Of a stretch of 64,000 bases of DNA, positions 48,879 to 64,000 are shown piece by piece; within the stretch, counting starts at the first letter, position 1; every line of letters begins with the position of its first letter. Source of the stretch: Auanema rhodensis (taxonomy: Eukaryota > Animalia > Nematoda); contig OZ059894.1 of assembly GCA_964057225.1 (NCBI GenBank), positions 5,580,001 to 5,644,000 of the forward strand. Direction: 5' to 3'. The notes beneath the pieces are model-generated. The model made no database searches. It was not told the origin of the DNA and saw nothing but the letters and a program-made list of their open reading frames with translations. A program made the position numbers and the translations under genes.

Positions 48879-49615
48879 ATGAAGACTATCAGGTAAATAC
48901 CTAGTTAACATCACAACAGGTTCAACTCTCATTTTTTAGTATCCTTATTGCTTTTGTTGGTGTTTGTTCTGCTCAATATGCTGCTTGGCCAGTTAGCTCG
49001 TATAGCCCATACTATGCAAGATACTACAGTGCTGCACTTTCTCCATCTTTAGCAGCTCCTCAAGTTGTGGCTGCTGCTCCAGCTCTTTCTCAGCCTATTG
49101 CTGCATCCCCTGCATTTGCTGCTGCTGCTGCTAATGGACTTCCAGTTGTCGCCTCTCCACCACTTGCCTACCCATCTCCAGTTGCCGCTTCTCCAGTTGC
49201 TCCAGGCCCATTGGCTTACCCAGCTCCAGTTGCTGCTGCTCCAGCTCCACTTGCCTACCCAGCTCCAGTTGCTGCTGCTCCAGCTCCACTTGCGTACCCA
49301 GCACCAGTCGCTGCTGCTCCTGCTCCAATGGCCTACCCTGCGCCAGTTGCTGCTGCTCCAGCTCCACTAGCCTACCCAGCTCCAGTTGCTGCTGCTCCAG
49401 CTCCATTAGCCTATCCAGCTCCAGTTGCTGCTGCTCCAGCTCCATTAGCATACCCAGCTCCAGTAGCTGCCCCTATTGCACAGACACCTGTAGCTGCTGC
49501 TCCAGTTGCTGCAGCTCCTTTCGCAGCAGCTCCAGCCGTTGTTCCAGCGTATGCTCCATTCCAGACTGCTGCTTACTTCATCGGAGCAAACAAAGATAAA
49601 ACTGTCAAAGCTTAA
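48879..49615 (+). CDS. Secreted Ala/Pro-rich low-complexity protein with 13-aa (39-bp) repeats
   Basis: TATA-like ATATAAA near 48819; MKTIS/ILIAFVGVCSA signal peptide across one intron; about 8 copies of PLAYPAPVAAAPA with synonymous variation; ends YFIGANKDKTVKA*. Confidence 0.88.
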
Positions 49616-51073: not shown

Positions 51074-52223
51074 ATGGAAAAAAAATTAAAATTAGTTGTA
51101 GTAGGAGACAGCTATGTCGGTAAAACCAGGTACGATTTTCCTTTTCTTATTCGTTTTTTCAATGATATGCTGATCTTTTGGTCTGTTTTTTTCTGAACAA
51201 ATCATCTATGCAGTGATCAAACATTTTTTCTACAATGATTTTATTTTTGATTGCAGTTTACTATTCGCTTATACACAGAAACAATTTCTTGACAATTATG
51301 CAACAACAGTATTTGATAATTGGGCTGTAACTATTAGTATTGAAAATATTCTGTATACTGTTAACTTATTTGATACAGCTGGTCAGGTATATTTTATGCA
51401 AAACTTTAATTTCAAAAATCATCTAAAGAATAAAAGAAAAAATAAATTATGATTTAGTGTTCTTGAATGTAGTTGTTTTAAATCTTCTTTATTTTACATC
51501 TTTTGTGAAAGTCACATAGTCGAACCGTAAAAACTTTCTTGTAGAATATTGTGCAAATAATATTCGCAAATATCTTTTTTCTGTTCATTTTAGTTAGAAG
51601 ATCAAAAGATGTTTGAAGTTGTTGAAGGACACAATTATACAAATTTACAACATAGCATGAATCTCGGATTTATAATTTCAATAAAACATTATTTTAAACG
51701 TTCTCTAAAACAATTAGAATCAAAAAAGTTCTTTGTACAGTACATACATTAGATTATAAAATAACTTTTCAGGAAGATTATGATAATTTACGTTATCTCA
51801 GTTATCCAAATACTGATGCTTTTTTACTATGTTTCTCATTGGCAGATCCAACAAGTTTGGAAGCTTGCCGAACAGTATGGATGCCGGAAATAAGGAAGTA
51901 TGCTGGCGAGTCTGTTCCGGTTATACTGGTTGGAACAAAAGAAGATCTCTTGGATAAAACAAATGAAAAGCAAGCAGTTTCAGATGAGCAAGCAACAAAA
52001 GTAGCTTCACAGGTTAGTTAATATAATATTGATAAGATTTCTACTATTCAATAATTATCTTATTTCTTATTAGTTCAATGTTCAGATAGGTTGTACAAAA
52101 TTTTTGGCATGCTCATCGTTAACACATAGAGGTTTAAAACGAGTTTTCGATGAAGCGTTCTTGGTCGCTATAGGATTATCAGTAGCAGATGATACCAAAA
52201 AACCATGTTGTACTATTCAATAA
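51074..52223 (+). CDS. crp-1: Cdc42-related Rho-family GTPase CRP-1
   Basis: [53 protein letters not shown] and C-terminal CCTIQ*; 4 exons. Confidence 0.88.
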
Positions 52224-53071
52224 AATCAGTTTATTTCTTTAAAAAAATGTTTTTTTTTTAATATAGAACTTTATATATAAATGACGAATGTAGGTGAAAT
52301 AGAATGTTAAGCTTTAAATAGTGGATCAACTTAGCAGCATTATTTATTCTGAACTACAAAATGTTATTTTTTAAGCTCAACTAGAGAGGGTTCATAGTTA
52401 AAGATGTAGTGTTGTAACAATCGATTCAATTTGACTGAACATCTTATATGAATGATTCGTTATGATTATCAATTCTTATCTCTGACTTTTCAGGCGCATA
52501 ACTTTTCTAAATGATTGTTCAGATAGTTCAAAAACAATAAAGTTCAAAATAATAATAGTTTTAAAACAATATGGTGAGTTTAGAGGTGTTCAGTGTGTTT
52601 ATTTGTGTTTCATTTTTCGTAAAAAAAAGCCAAACATTACTGTATCCGGGTTTCATAATATTTCTAATGAACCAGTGTGATAATTTCAAGAATTAAAGCT
52701 ATAATCCTGGCATCATTTGTAATATTTTAATCAGATATTATTTCATGAATAGTAATGGGAAATTTTTGATAGAAAAAGAAGGGATACGAAAATATAAAAA
52801 AACAATTCAAGTTTGATACCATACTTTAGTAATTTAAAAAAGCTTAATTTTCATGATTTTCATGCGTTATATGTCTTATTATATAAACAGAAAGCCAACT
52901 ACGATGAATTATGCAGGTTTTTTTTTTGTAATATTTGGCGCTTCTATCATTGTTTTTTTTACTGTTGATTGCTCGGCAATGAATTATGACACTGTTCTTG
53001 AAATCAAAATTTATTTGACTAACACATTTTTATAATATATGTAAATTATGAATACATAAATCTGGATTCGA

Positions 53072-53290
53072 TCTAGGTGGTAATGCCATAAATATCGATA
53101 TGAACGCTGATAATGAGAATATTAATGCGAAAAAACAGCGAAAGAACATTTGATATTATGTTTTCACTTGGTTTTTTTCATAATTTATGCAATTGATACA
53201 AATGTTTTTCTATTCCTTTTTAGACATATACCTGTACTAATGGGTTTGAAGTTTAAAATATTTTGAAAGTTAGAAAAATCATTTATACCA
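53072..53290 (+). repeat. Degenerate direct repeat, left copy (partner 61874-62060)
   Basis: Shares ATGTTTTCACTxGG..TTTTTTCATA and GTTTGAAGTTT..AATA.TTT.AAAGTTA.AAAAATCATTTATACC with the right flank, in the same orientation. Confidence 0.65.
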
Positions 53291-53329
53291 TTTATTTAAA
53301 ATTTTGATTTTCTTTTCATTTCCTCCATT

Positions 53330-54442
53330 CGACTCTTCGTTTCTTCCTCGGCTCTTACGCGGCTTCTCCCACGTTTTTTCGGTTCTTCCTTCGATTTTCG
53401 GTTCTTTCTTGGTTCTTTCTTGGATCTTTCTTGACTATTCTTCTAGGTGAAGAACCAAAAAGTCGATGAAGAACAGAGGAGGCGAGCAAAAACCGAATAG
53501 TCGAAAAATCGAAAGGCTGAAGGAAAAAGGACGAATCGAGAAAGAGATCAGGAAGAGCCCAGGACGAACCAACGAATCGAGGAAGAATTCGGGAAGAACC
53601 GAGGACAAACCGAACTACTGAAGAGGAGCCGAGGAAAAACCAAAAATTCGAGGTCCGTCGTACGTAGTTCAGAAGATCCTAGGAAGAATCGAAGATTCAA
53701 AGAAAAACCGAAGTGGTGAGGAAGAACCGACGAATAGAAGAAGAGTTCAGGAAGAGCCACGGGAGAACCGAACTGCTGAAGACGAGCCGAGGAAGAACCG
53801 AGGATTCGAAAACGGGCAGAAGAAACAACGATCAGCCGCTTAAAAACAGAAAAGTGCCGAAAAAACCAAAAAGTCGAGGTATGTCGTACGTTGTTCAGAA
53901 GAGCCTAGGAAGAGTTGAAGATTTGAAGAAAAACTGAAGTGCTGAAGAAGAACCTACGAATAGAAGGAGCTACGGGAGAACCGAACTGCTGAAGACGAGC
54001 CGAGAAAGAACCGAAAAGTCGCGGAAGAGCCAACAAATCGAGGTCCGTGGTCCAGAATATCAACGGTTTAGAAGAGAAGAATCCAAGGGTGAAAGAAAAA
54101 CCGATGAGTCAAGGAAGAGAACAGAAGAGTCCCGGAAAAACCAAAAAGTCGAGGTCCGTCGTACGTAGTTCAGAAGATCCTAGGAAGAATCGAAGATTTG
54201 AAGAAAAACCGAAGTGCTGAAGAAGAACCGACGAATAGAAGGAGAGTTCAGGAGGATCCACGGGAGAACCGAACTGCTGAAGACGTGCCGAGGAAGAACC
54301 GAAAAGTCGCGGAAGAGCCAACAACTCGAGGTCCGTCGTACGTTGTTCAGGAGGAACATGGTTCGACGAGCCTAGGAAGAATCAAAGATTCAAAAAAAAC
54401 CGAAATGCTGAAGACGAGCAGACAGACAAAACGATCAGCCAA
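53330..54442 (+). repeat. Complex GAAGA-rich minisatellite, left arm (first ~115 bp in opposite orientation)
   Basis: Recurrent GAAGAACCGA, GAAGAGCC, CGAGGTCCGT and CCGAACTGCTGAAGACGAGCCGAG modules. Confidence 0.85.
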
Positions 54443-56036
54443 TTAAAATAGAAGAGAGAGTAGTTCCTTGGTCCAGCAGACTGATGATCCTGGACATTCG
54501 TCGTTGTAAGGAGCCAAAGAAGCAGACAGCGGTACACAATGCCAAACTCTGTAAATTTCAAGAATACAAATACATTTCAATTTCAAATTATTACCAGAAA
54601 TCAGGAGTATGAGAAGAGAGTAGTTCCTCGGTCCAGCAGACTGATGATCCGGGTCATTCGTCGTTGGATGAAGCCAAAGAAACAGACAGCGGCACACAAT
54701 GCCAAACTCTGTAAATTTCAAGAATACAAATACATTTCAATTTCAAATTATTACCAGAAATCAGGAGTATGAGAAGAGAGTAGTTCCTTGGTCCAGCAGA
54801 CTGATGATCCGGGTCATTCGTCGTTGAAAGGAGCCAAAGAAGCAGACAGCGGTACACAATGCCAAACTCTGTAAATTTCAAGAATACAAATACATTTCAA
54901 TTTCAAATTATTACCAGAAATCAGGAGTATGAGAAGAGAGTAGTTCCTCGGTTCAGCAGACTGATGATCCGGGTCATTCGTCGTTGAAAGGAGCCAAAGA
55001 AGCAGACAGCGGTACACAATGCCAAACTCTGTAAATTTCAAGAATACAAATACATTTCAATTTCAAATTATTACCAGAAATCAGGAGTATGAGAAGAGAG
55101 TAGTTCCTCGGTCCAGCAGACTGATGATCCGGGTCATTCGTCGTTGAAAGGAGCCAAAGAAGCAGACAGCGGTACACAATGCCAAACTCTGTAAATTTCA
55201 AGAATACAAATACATTTCAATTTCAAATTATTACCAGAAATCAGTAGTATGAGAAGAGAGTAGTTCCTCGGTCCAGCAGACTGATGATCCGGGTCATTCG
55301 TCGTTGAAAGGAGCCAAAGAAGCAGACAGCGGTACACAATGCCAAACTCTGTAAATTTCAAGAATACAAATACATTTCAATTTCAAATTATTACCAGAAA
55401 TCAGTAGTATGAGAAGAGAGTAGTTCCTCGGTCCAGCAGACTGATGATCCGGGTCATTCGTCGTTGGATGAAGCCAAAGAAACAGACAGCGGCACACAAT
55501 GCCAAACTCTGTAAATTTCAAAACTACAAATACATTTAAATATCAAATTATTACCAGAAATCAGGAGTATGAGAAGAGAGTAGTTCCTCGGTTCAGCAGA
55601 CTGATGATCCGGGTCATTCGTCGTTGAAAGGAGCCAAAGAAGCAGACAGCGGTACACAATGCCAAACTCTGTAAATTTCAAGAATACAAATACATTTCAA
55701 TTTCAAATTATTACCAGAAATCAGTAGTATGAGAAGAGAGTAGTTCCTCGGTCCAGCAGACTGATGATCCGGGTCATTCGTCGTTGAAAGGAGCCAAAGA
55801 AGCAGACAGCGGCACACAATGCCAAACTCTGTAAATTTCAAGAATACAAATACATTTCAATTTCAAATTATTACCAGAAATCAGGAGTATGAGAAGAGAG
55901 TAGTTCCTCGGTCCAGCAGACTGATGATCCGGGTCATTCGTCGTTGGATGAAGCCAAAGAAACAGACAGCGGCACTCAATGCCAAACTCTGTAAATTTCA
56001 AGAATACAAATACATTATAATTTCAAATTATTACCA
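54443..56036 (-). repeat. Tandem array of ten 160-bp units (left arm)
   Basis: CTGATGATCC recurs at 54481, 54641 ... 55921 with exact 160-bp period. Confidence 0.95.
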
Positions 56037-56521
56037 AGTAATTAGCATATTCACAAGACGAACATTGTGTGCTTGATTGTTTATTGAATATATAAGATTA
56101 TCTGGATATCAGATTTTTTTTAAATATTACATAGATCATCTCCGTTTTCGAATTATCGGAGTTTCAAAATATGAAATTAAAATTTATAAACTCACGTACT
56201 CTTCATTATATCTGTAATACTAAAATGAATAATTGAAGCAAGAATTGAAACTTAGGTATGCGGCTTGTTGAAGCCATATTAATGCTACATGCGATCCAAT
56301 CTTCCTTCTGGAGAAATTTTACATGAAAGTTATGGTTTCTGTTCATCTTGTCGAGTTTGCTTTCTGAGAATAAGCTTATACAGATATGGTTCAAGTTAAG
56401 TAATAAATTACCTTGGTCATTCTTTTGTTTTACCGCAAGTACTTTAGAGCTAGCGAAGAGACTTTGCAGTCTGAAGAGCCTAGGAGGTGTCGACCTATGC
56501 GGACAGCGACAGTTAGACAAA

Positions 56522-56592
56522 TGAGTGTCAACTGAAAAAAATTTGCTTATATACCCCTTGACGGGCAGACCACGTAAACCACGCTTACGTCA
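56522..56592 (-). promoter_or_regulatory. Outward-facing core promoter of left arm (TGACGTAA, TATA, Inr)
   Basis: Mirror copy of 57944-58017; CTTATATAC at 56546-56554. Confidence 0.6.
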
Positions 56593-57943
56593 AATTTCAA
56601 AAATTCTAAAAACAAAAACCGGCTGTACATGATTTGAAAATTATGGGAAATGGATTAAAATTTGTGTTTAACTAATGTTTTTATTTTAATTTTAAGGAAT
56701 TATATTACATTTTTAATATTATTATATTATTTATACTGTTTTATACTTTAAAATTATCAAATATTTTTATATAACAATAATTTTTAATTAAATATTTGAT
56801 TTTTTTTATTCATTTCAAGTTGGTTATTACTAATAAACATTTAAATTATTTGAAACATATAAATATTATGAGAATTAATTATAAGTTAATGTTTATGGAA
56901 CATAGACCAAGGCAAATTTATTCTAATTTGACTTGAGTTCGACATTATTCAAATTAGCACAAGAAAATCGAATATTTTAAAAATAAATGCAAAAACATTA
57001 TATAATATTATTATTTAATTATTTCGAGAAATAACAGAAAAAGAACAAGCTTCAGATGTACATGTAAACTCAACATACACGTTGTTGTTCACCAAAAATA
57101 TAAATCGCGGCGTTCTTTTTTATTAATTTCTAATAAAATAATTTATTTAAATTCATTTAAAAGCTAGATCTCAGTGAAATCTCAGTTAAGAAATTCACTC
57201 AAAGATCCGATTTATCGTCTTCGTCTCCTCAAGACGAAACGATTGGTATATTTTTAAATACTCCAACCGACGCTGTTTATTGGAGGGAGTTGTAAAATAG
57301 TTTTCTATTTTTTAAACCAATTAGAATTTCAGATACATCTACATTTTTCTACCCTGTATTGAAAAAATATAACTTTTAAATGAATTTAAATAAATTTTTT
57401 TATTAGAAATTAATAAAAAAGAACGCCGCGATTTATATTTTTGGTGAACAACAACGTGTATGTTGAGTTTACATGTACATCTGAAGCTTGTTCTTTTTCT
57501 GTTATTTCTCGAAATAATTAAATAATAATATTATATAATGTTTTTGCATTTATTTTTAAAATATTCGATTTTCTTGTGCTAATTTGAATAATGTCGAACT
57601 CAAGTCAAATTAGAATAAATTTGCCTTGGTCTATGTTCCATAAACATTAACTTATAATTAATTCTCATAATATTTATATGTTTCAAATAATTTAAATGTT
57701 TATTAGTAATAACCAACTTGAAATGAATAAAAAAAATCAAATATTTAATTAAAAATTATTGTTATATAAAAATATTTGATAATTTTAAAGTATAAAACAG
57801 TATAAATAATATAATAATATTAAAAATGTAATATAATTCCTTAAAATTAAAATAAAAACATTAGTTAAACACAAATTTTAATCCATTTCCCATAATTTTC
57901 AAATCATGTACAGCCGGTTTTTGTTTTTAGAATTTTTGAAATT

Positions 57944-58017
57944 TGACGTAAGCGTGGTTTACGTGGTCTGCCCGTCAAGGGGTATATAAGCAAATTTTTT
58001 TCAGTTGACACTCATTT
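57944..58017 (+). promoter_or_regulatory. Outward-facing core promoter of right arm (TGACGTAA, TATA, Inr)
   Basis: GTATATAAG (57982-57990) fits the nematode TATA consensus GTATAWWAG; Inr-like CTCATTT has its A 31 nt after the TATA; bZIP-type TGACGTAA at 57944. Confidence 0.6.
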
Positions 58018-58501
58018 GTCTAACTGTCGCTGTCCGCATAGGTCGACACCTCCTAGGCTCTTCAGACTGCAAAGTCTCTTCGCTAGCTCTAAAGTACTTG
58101 CGGTAAAACAAAAGAATGACCAAGGTAATTTATTACTTAACTTGAACCATATCTGTATAAGCTTATTCTCAGAAAGCAAACTCGACAAGATGAACAGAAA
58201 CCATAACTTTCATGTAAAATTTCTCCAGAAGGAAGATTGGATCGCATGTAGCATTAATATGGCTTCAACAAGCCGCATACCTAAGTTTCAATTCTTGCTT
58301 CAATTATTCATTTTAGTATTACAAATATAATGAAGAGTACGTGAGTTTATAAATTTTAATTTCATATTTTGAAACTCCGATAATTCGAAAACGGAGATGA
58401 TCTATGTAATATTTAAAAAAAATCTGATATCCAGATAATCTTATATATTCAATAAACAATCAAGCACACTATGTTCGTCTTGTGAATATGCTAATTACTT
58501 G

Positions 58502-59931
58502 GTAATAATTTGATATTTAAATGTATTTGTATTCTTGAAATTTACAGAGTTTGGCATTGTGTGCCGCTGTCTGTTTCTTTGGCTTCATCCAACGACGAAT
58601 GACCGGATCATCAGTCTGCTGGACCGAGGAACTACTCTCTTCTCATACTCCTGATTTCTGGTAATAATTTGAAATTGAAATGTATTTGTAGTTTTGAAAT
58701 TTACAGAGTTTGGCATTGTGTGCCGCTGTCTGTTTCTTTGGCTCCATTCAACGACGAATGACCCGGATCATCAGTCTGCTGGACCAAGGAACTACTCTCT
58801 TCTCATACTCCTGATTTCTGGTAATAATTTGAAATTATAATGTATTTGTATTCTTGAAATTTACAGAGTTTGGCATTGTGTGCCGCTGTCTGTTTCTTTG
58901 GCTTCATCCAACGACGAATGACCGGATCATCAGTCTGCTGGACCGAGGAACTACTCTCTTCTCATACTCCTGATTTCTGGTAATAATTTGAAATTGAAAT
59001 GTATTTGTAGTTTTGAAATTTACAGAGTTTGGCATTGTGTGCCGCTGTCTGTTTCTTTGGCTCCATTCAACGACGAATGACCCGGATCATCAGTCTGCTG
59101 GACCAAGGAACTACTCTCTTCTCATACTCCTGATTTCTGGTAATAATTTGAAATTGAAATGTATTTGTATTCTTGAAATTTACAGAGTTTGGCATTGTGT
59201 GCCGCTGTCTGTTTCTTTGGCTTCATCCAACGACGAATGACCCGGATCATCAGTCTGCTGGACCGAGGAACTACTCTCTTCTCATACTCCTGATTTCTGG
59301 TAATAATTTGAAATTGAAATGTATTTGTATTCTTGAAATTTACAGAGTTTGGCATTGTGTGCCGCTGTCTGTTTCTTTGGCTTCATCCAACGACGAATGA
59401 CCCGGATCATCAGTCTGCTGGACCGAGGAACTACTCTCTTCTCATACTCCTGATTTCTGGTAATAATTTGAAATTGAAATGTATTTGTATTCTTGAAATT
59501 TACAGAGTTTGGCATTGTGTGCCGCTGTCTGTTTCTTTGGCTTCATCCAACGACGAATGACCCGGATCATCAGTCTGCTGGACCGAGGAACTACTCTCTT
59601 CTCATACTCCTGATTTCTGGTAATAATTTGAAATTGGAATGTATTTGTATTCTTGAAATTTACAGAGTTTGGCATTGTGTACCGCTGTCTGCTTCTTTGG
59701 CTCCTTTCAACGACGAATGACCCGGATCATCAGTCTGCTGGACCGAGGAACTACTCTCTTCTCATACTCCTGATTTCTGGTAATAATTTGAAATTGAAAT
59801 GTATTTGTATTCTTGAAATTTACAGAGTTTGGCATTGTGTACCGCTGTCTGCTTCTTTGGCTCCTTACAACGACGAATGTCCAGGATCATCAGTCTGCTG
59901 GACCAAGGAACTACTCTCTCTTCTATTTTAA
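58502..59931 (+). repeat. Tandem array of nine 160-bp units (right arm)
   Basis: Reverse complement of the left array; two units (near 58601 and 58921) have a 1-bp deletion (GACCGG vs GACCCGG). Confidence 0.95.
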
Positions 59932-59934
59932 TTG

Positions 59935-61853
59935 GCTGATCGTTTTGTCTGTCTGCTCGTCTTCAGCATTTCGGTTTTTTTTGAATCTTTGATTCTTCCT
60001 AGGCTCGTCGAACCATGTTCCTCCTAAACAACGTACGACGGACCTCGAGTTGTTGGCTCTTCCGCGACTTTTCGGTTCTTCGTTCGGCTCGTCTTCAGCA
60101 GTTCGGTTCTCCCGTGGATCCTCCTGAACTCTCCTTCTATTCATCGGTTCTTCTTCAGCACTTCAGTTTTTCTTCAAATCTTCAACTCTTCCTAGGCTTT
60201 TCTCAAGTATTGACCTTCTGGATAACGGACGACGGACCTCGACTTTTTGGTTTTTCCGGGACTCTTCTGTTCTCTTCCTTGACTCATCGGTTTTTCTTTC
60301 ACCCTTGGATTCTTCTCTTCTAAACCGTTGATATTCTGGACCACGGACCTCGAGTTGTTGGCTCTTCCGCGACTTTTCGGTTCTTCCTCGGCTCGTCTTC
60401 AGCAGTTCGGTTCTCCCGTGGCTCCTTCTATTCGTCGGTTCTTCTTCAGCACTTCAGTTTTTCTTCAAATCTTCAACTCTTCCTAGGCTCTTCTGAACAA
60501 CGTACGACATACCTCGACTTTTTGGTTTTTTCGGCACTTTTCTGTTTTTAAGCGGCTGATCGTTGTTTCTTCTGCCCGTTTTCGAATCCTCGGTTCTTCC
60601 TCGGCTCGTATTCAGCAGTTCGGTTCTCCCGTGGCTCCTCCTGAACTCTCCTTCTATTCGTCGGTTCTTCTTCAGCACTTCAGTTTTTCTTCAAATCTTC
60701 AACTCTTCCTAGGCTTTTCTCAAGTATTGACCTTCTGGATAACGGACGACGGACCTCGACTTTTTGGTTTTTCCGGGACTCTTCTGTTCTCTTCCTTGAC
60801 TCATCGGTTTTTCTTTCACCCTTGGATTCTTTTCTTCTAAACCGTTGATATTCTGGACCACGGACCTCGAGTTGTTGGCTCTTCCGCGACTTTTCGGTTC
60901 TTCCTCGGCTCGTCTTCAGCAGTTCGGTTCTCCCGTGGATCCTCCTGAACTCTCCTTCTATTCGTCGGTTCTTCTTCAGCACTTCAGTTTTTCTTCAAAT
61001 CTTCAACTCTTCCTAGGCTTTTCTCAAGTATTGACCTTCTGGATAACGTACGACGGACCTCGAGTTGTTGGCTCTTCCGCGACTTTTCGGTTCTTCCTCG
61101 GCTCGTCTTCAGCAGTTCGGTTCTCCCGTGGATCCTCCTGAACTCTCCTTCTATTCGTCGGTTCTTCTTCAGCACTTCGGTTTTTCTTCAAATCTTCGAT
61201 TCTTCCTAGGATCTTCTGAACTACGTACGACGGACCTCGACTTTTTGGTTTTTCCGGGACTCTTCTGTTCTCTTCCTTGACTCATCGGTTTTTCTTTCAC
61301 CCTTGGATTCTTCTCTTCTAAACCGTTGATATTCTGGACCACGGACCTCGAGTTGTTGGCTCTTCCGCGACTTTTCGGTTCTTCCTCGGCTCGTCTTCAG
61401 CAGTTCGGTTCTCCCGTGGCTCCTTCTATTCGTCGGTTCTTCTTCAGCACTTCAGTTTTTCTTCAAATCTTCAACTCTTCCTAGGCTCTTCTGAACAACG
61501 TACGACATACCTCGACTTTTTGGTTTTTTCGGCACTTTTCTGTTTTTAAGCGGCTGATCGTTGTTTCTTCTGCTCGTTTTCGAATTTTAGGTTTTTTCTC
61601 GGCTCGTCTTCAGCAGTGCGGTCAAATCTTCAACTCTTCCTAGGCTTTTTTCAAGTATTGACCTTCTGGATAACGGACGACGGATCTCGACTTTTTGGTT
61701 TTTCCGGGACTCTTCTGTTCTCTTCCTTGACTCATCGGTTTTTCTTTCACCCTTGGATTCTTTTCTTCTAAACCGTTGATATTCTGGACCACGGACCTCG
61801 AGTTTTCGGCTCTTCCGCGACTTTTCGATTCTTCATCGGCTCTTCGGCTTCTT
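59935..61853 (-). repeat. Complex GAAGA-rich minisatellite, right arm (expanded, ~1.9 kb)
   Basis: Same modules as the left minisatellite in reverse orientation (TCGGTTCTTC, ACGGACCTCG), in shuffled higher-order blocks. Confidence 0.88.
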
Positions 61854-61873
61854 ACTGGTCGCCATCCTCAAAT

Positions 61874-62060
61874 TCTAGTTGATAAGCCTAAGCCTCGAAC
61901 TGTACTAGATATCTTTTGATATCTCAGATTTACTCTCATTAACACGCAATACAAGGGGATCGCATGTTTTCACTAGGGTTTTTTCATATAAACATTCCCG
62001 AACTAATATGTGTTTGAAGTTTTTAATACTTTAAAAGTTAAAAAAATCATTTATACCTAG
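61874..62060 (+). repeat. Degenerate direct repeat, right copy (partner 53072-53290)
   Basis: See left copy. Confidence 0.65.
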
Positions 62061-62522
62061 GGAAATTAAAAAATTTACAAAATCGCAAAAGAGTATGAAG
62101 GTAACATAAAATATACATGAAATATGAAATGATCTATTGACGAATCCAAACATTTTCAAAAGGTAAACCAAATAATTCTCAGATACTTATCATATTTGAA
62201 CTGTTGTAATATACAAAAAATGATATGAGATGAGAAAGATTGAACTAAGGTTTTAATATACAAAATATTATGCTCTTTAGTTTATTAAAAATGTACTGAA
62301 TGGAAATAGGGAAACAATTTTTCTAAAAATATGGATATTCGACAAAATGCGTAAGTTTTGTTATTTGAGATGTAATGATAATTATATACATAATATGAAA
62401 TACATCAACGATATGACTATTAGACATCTGAGGCATTAAGCAAAATTTATGTGGGTTCACCTTGTCCGCAATCAAATTCAAAAAAAGTTTATAAAAGCAT
62501 CTGAAACTGCAGAATATGATTC

Positions 62523-64000
62523 TTACAGAGCAGTTATGCTAAGATCTCTTTTTCCTAGCTGTGCCGCTGGTTTCATTATCGTGTGCAAACGAAACCCTGG
62601 TGTTCCTGCATCAAGTTCGGCTTGCCAACGTGTTCGAGAACGTGTCAGATCATTAGCGCTTACAGCGTCGTCACCCCATCCGCTATCACCATCGTCATCA
62701 GCTAGTGTCATAGCATTTCCTGGATCAAAACAACCCGGACTCCAATCCAGATTCGGTAATTGACGTTGAGATAATGGTTGCCATACGGGGGATATTCGTT
62801 CATTCTCTACAAAATTTTTGCCGTACAATAGCAGTGAAAAATGAAATCACTAGTCACCTGTCTCACCTAAATCTACAGTGGTTTTTTCATTTTCTGATAC
62901 TATAGCTGTGACGGCTTGGTAAGCTCCTTGATAATCACGACGTTTTACAAAACAGCAACAATATTCTTGGCGTATTAATCTCAGCAAATGAGCTCCATGA
63001 TGCCTGAAAGAACGATTGGTAGAAACACTGCTGGAGATTTAATTCAATAATGATCTTACTGAAAACATTCTCTATAATCCTTATTAAAAATCATATATAT
63101 GACGCAGTTAACAGATGAATTAAAAATAACTAAGAAGTTACTGGCGTCTGAGAGCAAATTAACCACTAATGGATCTGGGATAGAAAATGTTTCAATCATA
63201 TTAACAACCAGAGCCTTAAAATAAATTTTGATTGCTTTCAATATTGTAAGAGCACAAACGAACCAAAGTATTGCAAGCCAGAAAGAGAATCACAACCATG
63301 ATCATCGTAATAGTATCGTCTCCTGCACCATCATCTGCTTTTGCTGGTAATGATGCATCATGAGCTGAATTGCTAAAAAGAAAAAAAGTCACATATATGT
63401 GACTATCACCATGTAGAAACCATAGTATTTTTTGAAAAAAAATGAAATCGAACCTATCTTTGCTTTTTTTTCTTTCTAAACTCTGTCGACACAGAATTAT
63501 GGCATTCAAACATAAAAGAAATAAAAATGGTAACAAGGTCATCAGTACCATGTACATATATATATTATAAATAACATTAATCGTGAAGAATAAAGAAGTT
63601 GGGCAAATTTCTATTATATGCTCCTAAATTCAAAATAGCAGCTTTTTAATAATTTATTCTATATTACCTGACTAGCTTCATGGAAGCATTTCCGCAAATT
63701 GAACTGGGGAAACCGAAGGGAGTTATACATGATTGACACAATAATAACTGTGAAGCAAATTTTTTTTGCTTGTTGAACAGTACAATAACTTTTTGACAAT
63801 GATTTCCAACAAACCTAAATAAATGAAATGAAAACTTTTCTTTTGAAATAAGAAAATATTTTTTGTTTTCATTAACGTTATTAATTTACATTGATATAAC
63901 AGTCAAATGCTGCAGCAACTGTGAAATAGATACTACACGATTGAGCCATATATCCAAATGGAAGTGTGTATACAGTTGTGTATGGAGCTCTTGCCAGCTC
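62523..64000 (-). CDS. FMRFamide-peptide receptor (FRPR-family) class A GPCR, 3' portion (TM3 to C-terminus)
   Basis: TM5 YMVLMTLLPFLFLLCLNAII, TM6 DTITMIMVVILFLACNTL, TM7 LSDASNFLVIFNSSVNCVIYMIFNKDYR; the tail ends ...DLSITAL* (PDZ-type motif). The gene continues past the window end. Confidence 0.85.

Follow-up and report, generated by a model that had tools for sequence, protein, structure and literature searches.

What is the large palindrome at 53447-61853 of a 64-kb stretch of the Auanema rhodensis genome (contig OZ059894.1; the whole stretch of 64,000 nt is called the window below): a mobile element with long inverted repeats, a source of double-stranded RNA (dsRNA), an error of assembly or a duplicated gene? 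An earlier note, made from the letters of the window, had left a foldback-like element and an inverted amplicon side by side as readings of this locus. Here, we find that the palindrome is real: it is a mirror-image duplication, ~8.4 kb long, of a species-specific gene. In the explanation that is probably best, one orphan RNA polymerase II gene was duplicated head to head in inverted orientation, either recently or with later homogenisation by gene conversion, and the locus is a palindromic paralogue pair and not a mobile element. Two DNA runs were used, X1, a short-read run of 2019, and X9, which is labelled as another organism and shares 91% of sampled words; the RNA evidence consists of assembled contigs from two RNA runs of small size (X12 and X13). 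The palindrome is laid out as follows:

53447-57169: left arm of the palindrome, 3,723 nt
56593-57169, minus strand: left inner arm, the AT-rich upstream region of the left copy, a 99% mirror of 57367-57943
57170-57366, no strand: unique central spacer, 197 nt, spanned by an X1 DNA contig with 0 mismatches
57367-57943, plus strand: right inner arm, the AT-rich upstream region of the right copy
57367-61853: right arm of the palindrome, 4,487 nt

These lengths bear out the estimates of ~3.7 and ~4.5 kb given in the earlier note, whose descriptive statements were all confirmed. The core of the arms (55932-57169 and 57367-58604) is an inverted repeat of 1238 nt that is 99% complementary with 197 nt between its halves; it is real and far above chance expectation. 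The unique spacer had been put at 209 bp, which is the same gap measured from the mismatches at 57164/57167 and 57369/57372, the sole cause of the difference from 197 nt in the arm alignment. As had also been noticed, the inner ~600 nt of each arm are very AT-rich (GC 0.17-0.26). When the arms were aligned base by base over the unique inner 1.13 kb (57373-58500), exactly three substitutions were found, at 57397, 58324 and 58470, in agreement with the previous count of about three in ~1.1 kb, and 59826-60081 differed from its left counterpart at one position; the unique parts of the arms are ~99.7% identical. No open reading frame (ORF) of at least 50 aa was found in the spacer and inner arms, and eight ORFs of the locus and its flanks had no Pfam match, so that the statement that no transposase is visible also stands. 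The spacer contained no tRNA and no Rfam family; a tRNA scan of 52000-64000 was likewise negative, and no Rfam family was found in the whole window at the gathering threshold.

The centre of the palindrome and the number of copies were both accessible from DNA reads. An X1 contig of 319 nt covered 57109-57427 with 0 mismatches, which includes the whole spacer and 61 nt of each arm and argues against the chimera that the earlier note had asked to be checked for. X9 covered 57204-57558 at single-copy depth, with the right half of the spacer at a depth of 12.5 against 11-15 in the flank. By contrast, the exon-bearing part of the arms was sequenced to about twice the depth of the flanks: in X1, depth was 503 over 58067-58402 and 518 over 59890-60025 compared with 267-269 in the flank, and in X9 it was 24.2-24.6 over the exon part compared with 11-14. 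A ratio of 1.9-2.0 in both runs indicates that only the two arms contribute, i.e. about two copies, and no further copy of the locus was found in the other 55 kb of the window. The duplicate consists of two inverted copies around a short unique spacer and, by read depth and the window search, is local rather than dispersed. In addition, X9 contigs diverged from the window sequence at 57204, 57658, 58244 and 61559, so that the X9 strain or species may differ in the AT-rich inner arms and in part of the spacer.

Each arm carries one predicted transcription unit that reads away from the centre. The parts of the two units are:

57944-58004, plus strand: putative right promoter, TGACGTAA...TACGTGG at 57944-57966 and TATATAA at 57983-57989
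58014-58124, plus strand: right copy exon 1, with an approximate 5' end and the same sequence as in the left copy
58125-58172, plus strand: right copy intron 1, 48 nt, GT..AG, RNA joint 58122 to 58171 with the cut at +2
58173-58501, plus strand: right copy exon 2, RNA joint 58500 to 59505 with the cut at +1, GT..AG
58500-59919: right 160-bp array, 8.9 copies
58502-59825, plus strand: right array cassettes, eight plus the last intron
59826-61853, plus strand: right copy terminal exon and pyrimidine-rich minisatellite, ~0.95 kb longer than the left
56532-56592, minus strand: putative left promoter, TGACGTAA/TACGTGG at 56570-56592 and TATATAA at 56547-56553
56412-56522, minus strand: left copy exon 1, 5' end approximate, mirror of 58014-58124
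56364-56411, minus strand: left copy intron 1, 48 nt, GT..AG, mirror of 58125-58172
56035-56363, minus strand: left copy exon 2, 329 nt, with several short AUG-initiated ORFs, the longest of 46 aa
54455-56036: left 160-bp array, 9.9 copies
54595-56034, minus strand: left array cassettes, nine in number and all in frame, with a 46-nt intron and a 114-nt exon in each
54549-54594, minus strand: left copy last 46-nt intron
54548 to 53447, minus strand: left copy terminal exon, running from the tenth array exon through the frame stop at 54382-54384 into the pyrimidine-rich minisatellite

The upstream motifs and TATA box that had been described in each arm were found, are identical in the two arms and have exact matches nowhere else in the window; they would act as promoters. 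The exon-like pieces with GT-AG introns were borne out by the RNA. Contigs of both X12 and X13 skip the 48-nt intron 58125-58172; the RNA is then continuous and unspliced over 58171-58402 and 58386-58500, and its next splice joins 58501 to an acceptor in the array. There, one RNA contig goes back 114 nt and another skips 46 nt with GT..AG borders, which together show that each 160-bp unit is a 114-nt exon plus a 46-nt intron and bear out the previous reading of the array unit as exon plus intron. All RNA joints are GT..AG on the plus strand of the right arm, and transcription is therefore outward. An X13 RNA contig at 61097-61383 lies in the outer block of the arm. Divergent transcription starts had been predicted near 58014 and 56522; RNA contigs begin at 58026 and 58050 (in right-arm coordinates), downstream of the TATA box, and the 5' ends given for exon 1 are approximate.

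The few differences between the arms reveal which copy the RNA comes from. Two diagnostic sites were covered: at 58324 (left 56212) the RNA has G and at 58470 (left 56066) it has A, in both cases the base of the left arm, and the left copy is therefore expressed. Both arms carry the promoter motifs and all splice sites, and the RNA contigs carry left-arm variants only; with an identical promoter and identical 5' exons, the right copy would be expected to be active as well. The view of the locus as an inverted amplicon with its own outward expression cassette was thus upheld for structure, direction, splicing and left-copy RNA, and extends to right-copy RNA as a prediction from the shared promoter. 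An AATAAA lies at 53296 on the minus strand, just outside the left arm. A canonical AATAAA is also present inside exon 2 at 58451 (left 56085), 50 nt before the donor, and RNA contig depth falls from ~12 to ~3 after ~58380; a short, prematurely polyadenylated isoform is possible.

The arrays diverge between the arms in a way that the unique parts do not. There are ten array exons on the left versus nine on the right, and the order of unit variants is not mirrored. Two right-array exons, 58548-58660 and 58867-58979, are 113 nt long, each by a 1-nt deletion (spacing 159), and these two deletions, near 58604 and 58924, are confined to the right arm. Distal to the arrays, each arm ends in a repetitive outer block:

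53447-54454: left outer block, purine-rich
59920-61853: right outer block, pyrimidine-rich

The outer blocks are minisatellites with a 19-nt base period and higher-order units of ~190-517 nt. They are collinear for ~0.8 kb, beyond which the right arm has ~0.95 kb of extra repeat, and the outer ends of both arms fade into degenerate minisatellite without defined terminal motifs.

Taken together, these results would fit the following history. One gene would have been duplicated head to head, its TATA promoter being followed by exon 1, an intron of 48 nt and a second exon of 329 nt, then by the array, in which every cassette is a 46-nt intron plus a 114-nt exon, and at the end by a terminal exon that runs into pyrimidine-rich minisatellite. 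The two copies would be transcribed away from their common AT-rich centre into RNAs of the same sequence. The near identity of the unique parts may reflect youth or arm-to-arm gene conversion; after the duplication, each internal array would have gained, lost and exchanged whole units independently of the other. As for the mature left-copy RNA, predicted at ~2.7 kb, the most likely identity is that of a long non-coding RNA or of a proto-gene that does not code yet: the one long open frame in it has no AUG and is placed behind a 440-nt leader full of short ORFs.

Several observations weigh against this explanation. The RNA evidence is limited to assembled contigs from small runs. X1 depth falls stepwise toward the centre over 57047-57842 (99-262), with 127 in the spacer and 262 in the inner arm, where the flank has 267 and the exon part ~500; we attribute this drop to snap-back and AT bias in a Nextera-type library, but it could also mean that some chromosomes are without this centre (structural polymorphism). 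Furthermore, an RNA contig of X13 with a depth of 13.9 and a DNA contig of X1 both match 58373-58409 and then continue into similar but diverged sequence, which may point to a third, diverged, expressed copy or allele elsewhere. Just outside both arms lies a repeat of ~95-130 nt that is direct, not inverted, and has only two copies in the window:

53158-53289, plus strand: flanking direct repeat, left copy, carrying a ~40-nt insert
61964-62057, plus strand: flanking direct repeat, right copy, 88-92% identical to the left copy

These flanking repeats are not accounted for by fold-back duplication in its simple form; they might be the mark of an older duplication or of an insertion with a long target duplication. 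The last two points concern the array itself: its exon is exactly 38 codons long, with all ten left-copy exons keeping one frame open, and a donor, GTACGT at 58337 (left 56199), directly after ATGAAGA and not observed in use, would join an AUG to the resulting frame of 399 codons.

These two points are the foundation of the alternative that survives best, a protein-coding pair, which we consider unlikely. Here, use of the donor after ATGAAGA would skip the rest of exon 2 and join the AUG to the array frame; the left copy would encode a protein of ~400 aa built from 38-aa repeats, in each of which a hydrophobic stretch spans the exon junction, and the right copy would be a frameshifted pseudogene. 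In spliced models of both copies assembled by script, the left copy has an open frame of 399 codons, from a TAA near the end of exon 2 through the ten array exons to the stop at 54382-54384, while the right-copy frame is broken by the two 113-nt exons. It speaks for a coding role that the donor at 58337 is in the correct phase behind the ATG, that the hydropathy window peaks at ~2.0 across the exon junction, and that the frame is intact in the copy for which expression was shown. However, this donor is the single one that fits an AUG route into the array frame, and the RNA contigs run unspliced through 58337-58500 and splice at 58501, an arrangement in which a TGA and a TAA stay in frame just upstream of the array frame, the frame has no Met, and the longest AUG-initiated ORF of the spliced model is 46 aa. 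The hydrophobic stretch also contains E and R residues.

Searches and unit comparisons did not favour a protein either. A search of 5.8 billion protein clusters, restricted to lengths of 0.55-1.75 times that of the query, gave no homologue of the array ORF (75 aa), the last array exon (54 aa) had no match among 1.84 billion representatives, and a protein atlas returned only low-score unnamed clusters, with a recognition of 1184 that is within the shuffled-sequence range. Among the 19 array units compared, exons were as variable as introns, and the variable exon sites were 6 non-synonymous to 3 synonymous (small numbers), so synonymous change is not in excess. An open circular frame was obtained in 43% of dinucleotide shuffles of the 114-nt exon; a length that is a multiple of 3 combined with an open frame would therefore arise by chance in ~14% of cases (1/3 x 0.43). 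The 19-nt base period of the outer block, which is not a multiple of 3, was counted as a further non-coding sign. We infer that the transcript most likely does not code for a protein. Folding of the 114-nt exon was no better than that of its shuffles (z = 0.1-1.0), which gives no indication of a structured RNA module. More speculatively, and more doubtful again than the coding pair, a satellite-like array of exon plus intron might have turned into a new gene, with translation of the left frame, from a minor isoform (donor 56199) or from a start other than AUG, into a repeat protein of ten hydrophobic hairpin-like units while the right copy decays; or the ~2.7-kb RNA, with ten identical 114-nt modules and a UCUUC-rich tail, might serve as a modular scaffold or sponge in a genome with programmed DNA elimination.

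A hairpin-RNA locus, in which read-through of the centre would fold into multi-kb dsRNA and feed endogenous small interfering RNAs (endo-siRNAs), had been suggested and now appears improbable. The 99%-identical arms would pair if one RNA spanned both, and such a transcript would even be compatible with an inverted gene duplication. However, dsRNA requires a transcript that crosses the centre, because divergent promoters on an inverted repeat give identical RNAs; here both promoters face outward and the products are same-sense and not complementary. No RNA contig was found on 56450-58025, which at this low depth is weak evidence.

The suggestion of a foldback-like or MULE-type element fares slightly worse. 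The locus would then be a non-autonomous transposon, foldback-type or Mutator-like and akin to FB of Drosophila or Tm1 of Meloidogyne, with long modular terminal inverted repeats (TIRs) that happen to hold promoters. The arms are indeed long, unequal and largely made of tandem repeats, as the composite TIRs of FB and Tm1 are; in Tm1, too, there is a spliced transcript that has no long ORF (PMC3169594), and RNA and DNA contigs contain a diverged form of one part of exon 2. Against this, the exon part is at twice flank depth in the two DNA runs, which leaves room for the arms only, the locus is unlike the remaining 55 kb of the window, and it has no transposase ORF and no Pfam match. A search for a target-site duplication (TSD) at the arm ends found no direct repeat of 8-11 bp adjoining them, the only shared 8-9-mers being internal to the minisatellite, and the outer ends fade out in that minisatellite instead of carrying terminal motifs. 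Finally, fold-back chimeras are a known artefact of long reads and X1 depth is low at the palindrome centre, but an assembly artefact of this kind, or a mis-join, is very improbable and largely refuted, since an independent short-read contig crosses both spacer junctions without mismatch, the spacer is at 1x and the exons at 2x in X9, and a chimera would not give arms that differ by substitutions and 1-nt deletions, in the number and order of their units and by 0.76 kb in length.

Some further features touch the palindrome or lie near it. Read inward on its purine-rich strand, the outer block was considered as a charged low-complexity protein and rejected; its base period is 19 nt, all frames are broken every 50-100 codons, and the only GT..AG candidates are 20-29 nt long. 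A degenerate 125-nt piece of the outer minisatellite in the opposite orientation (53320-53445, plus strand) adjoins the left arm end. It makes a second, weak strand switch at 53446, and its start resembles the extreme end of the right arm (61836-61858). Elsewhere in the window, an ORF of 182 aa made of Ala/Pro-rich repeats (PAPLAYPAPVAAA units) lies at 49067-49615 on the plus strand in an otherwise AT-rich region and may be an exon of a structural or cuticle-like repeat protein.

The locus reveals neither a new class of mobile element nor a new source of small RNA. Its value is that of what is probably a clean, RNA-supported, young palindromic gene duplicate in a nematode, whose unique arm parts have stayed nearly identical while the arrays reshuffle, and it demonstrates a tandem repeat whose unit is a working exon plus intron. 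It may offer a compact natural setting in which to study gene conversion between arms, the turnover of arrays and the process by which repeats become, or fail to become, coding.

How does this palindrome compare with known systems? The architecture had not been recognised from any described nematode element, but a precedent exists in the hsp-16 genes of Caenorhabditis elegans. According to what PMC3966223 relates of Russnak and Candido (1985), 1.9-kb gene modules (hsp16-1/hsp16-48) form an inverted repeat around 416 unique bp there, the arms are identical while the flanks have diverged, and gene conversion was proposed. This is the closest precedent: in both cases, whole gene modules lie in inverted orientation and almost identical on the two sides of a unique stretch of a few hundred bp (416 there versus 197 here). 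Unlike in hsp-16, each arm here appears to be one orphan gene without a recognisable protein, is 3.7-4.5 kb long and consists mostly of an internal tandem repeat that has turned over independently. More generally, adjacent inverted paralogues are a recognised class in Caenorhabditis (PMC3966223), and these are, as here, local, two-copy, head-to-head and of very low divergence. Unlike those duplicates, the identity of the present pair extends ~650 nt through non-transcribed AT-rich upstream DNA to a defined centre, which makes it a true palindrome.

The Tm1 foldback family of nematodes has composite inverted repeats with 9-bp TSDs and occurs in multiple copies (PMC3169594). FB and Tm1 share with this locus the long unequal inverted arms of tandem repeats, and Tm1 the spliced, ORF-poor transcript. 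The present locus differs from them in having no 9-bp TSD, no terminal motifs and no transposase at the locus and, by depth and window search, no dispersed family; moreover, its transcription units lie in the arms and face outward. In the palindromes of human and ape Y chromosomes, for which PMC3966223 cites arm-to-arm gene conversion from Rozen et al. (2003), transcribed genes likewise lie in inverted arms that are >99% identical around a unique spacer; those reach up to Mb size, whereas the palindrome described here is on the kb scale, with conversion as a possible cause of its arm identity. On these comparisons, the locus would be a two-copy inverted gene duplication of a kind already known in nematodes. 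What is particular to it is an orphan, probably non-coding gene, arms that are mostly a tandem repeat with a working exon-plus-intron unit, and the independent turnover of the two arrays.

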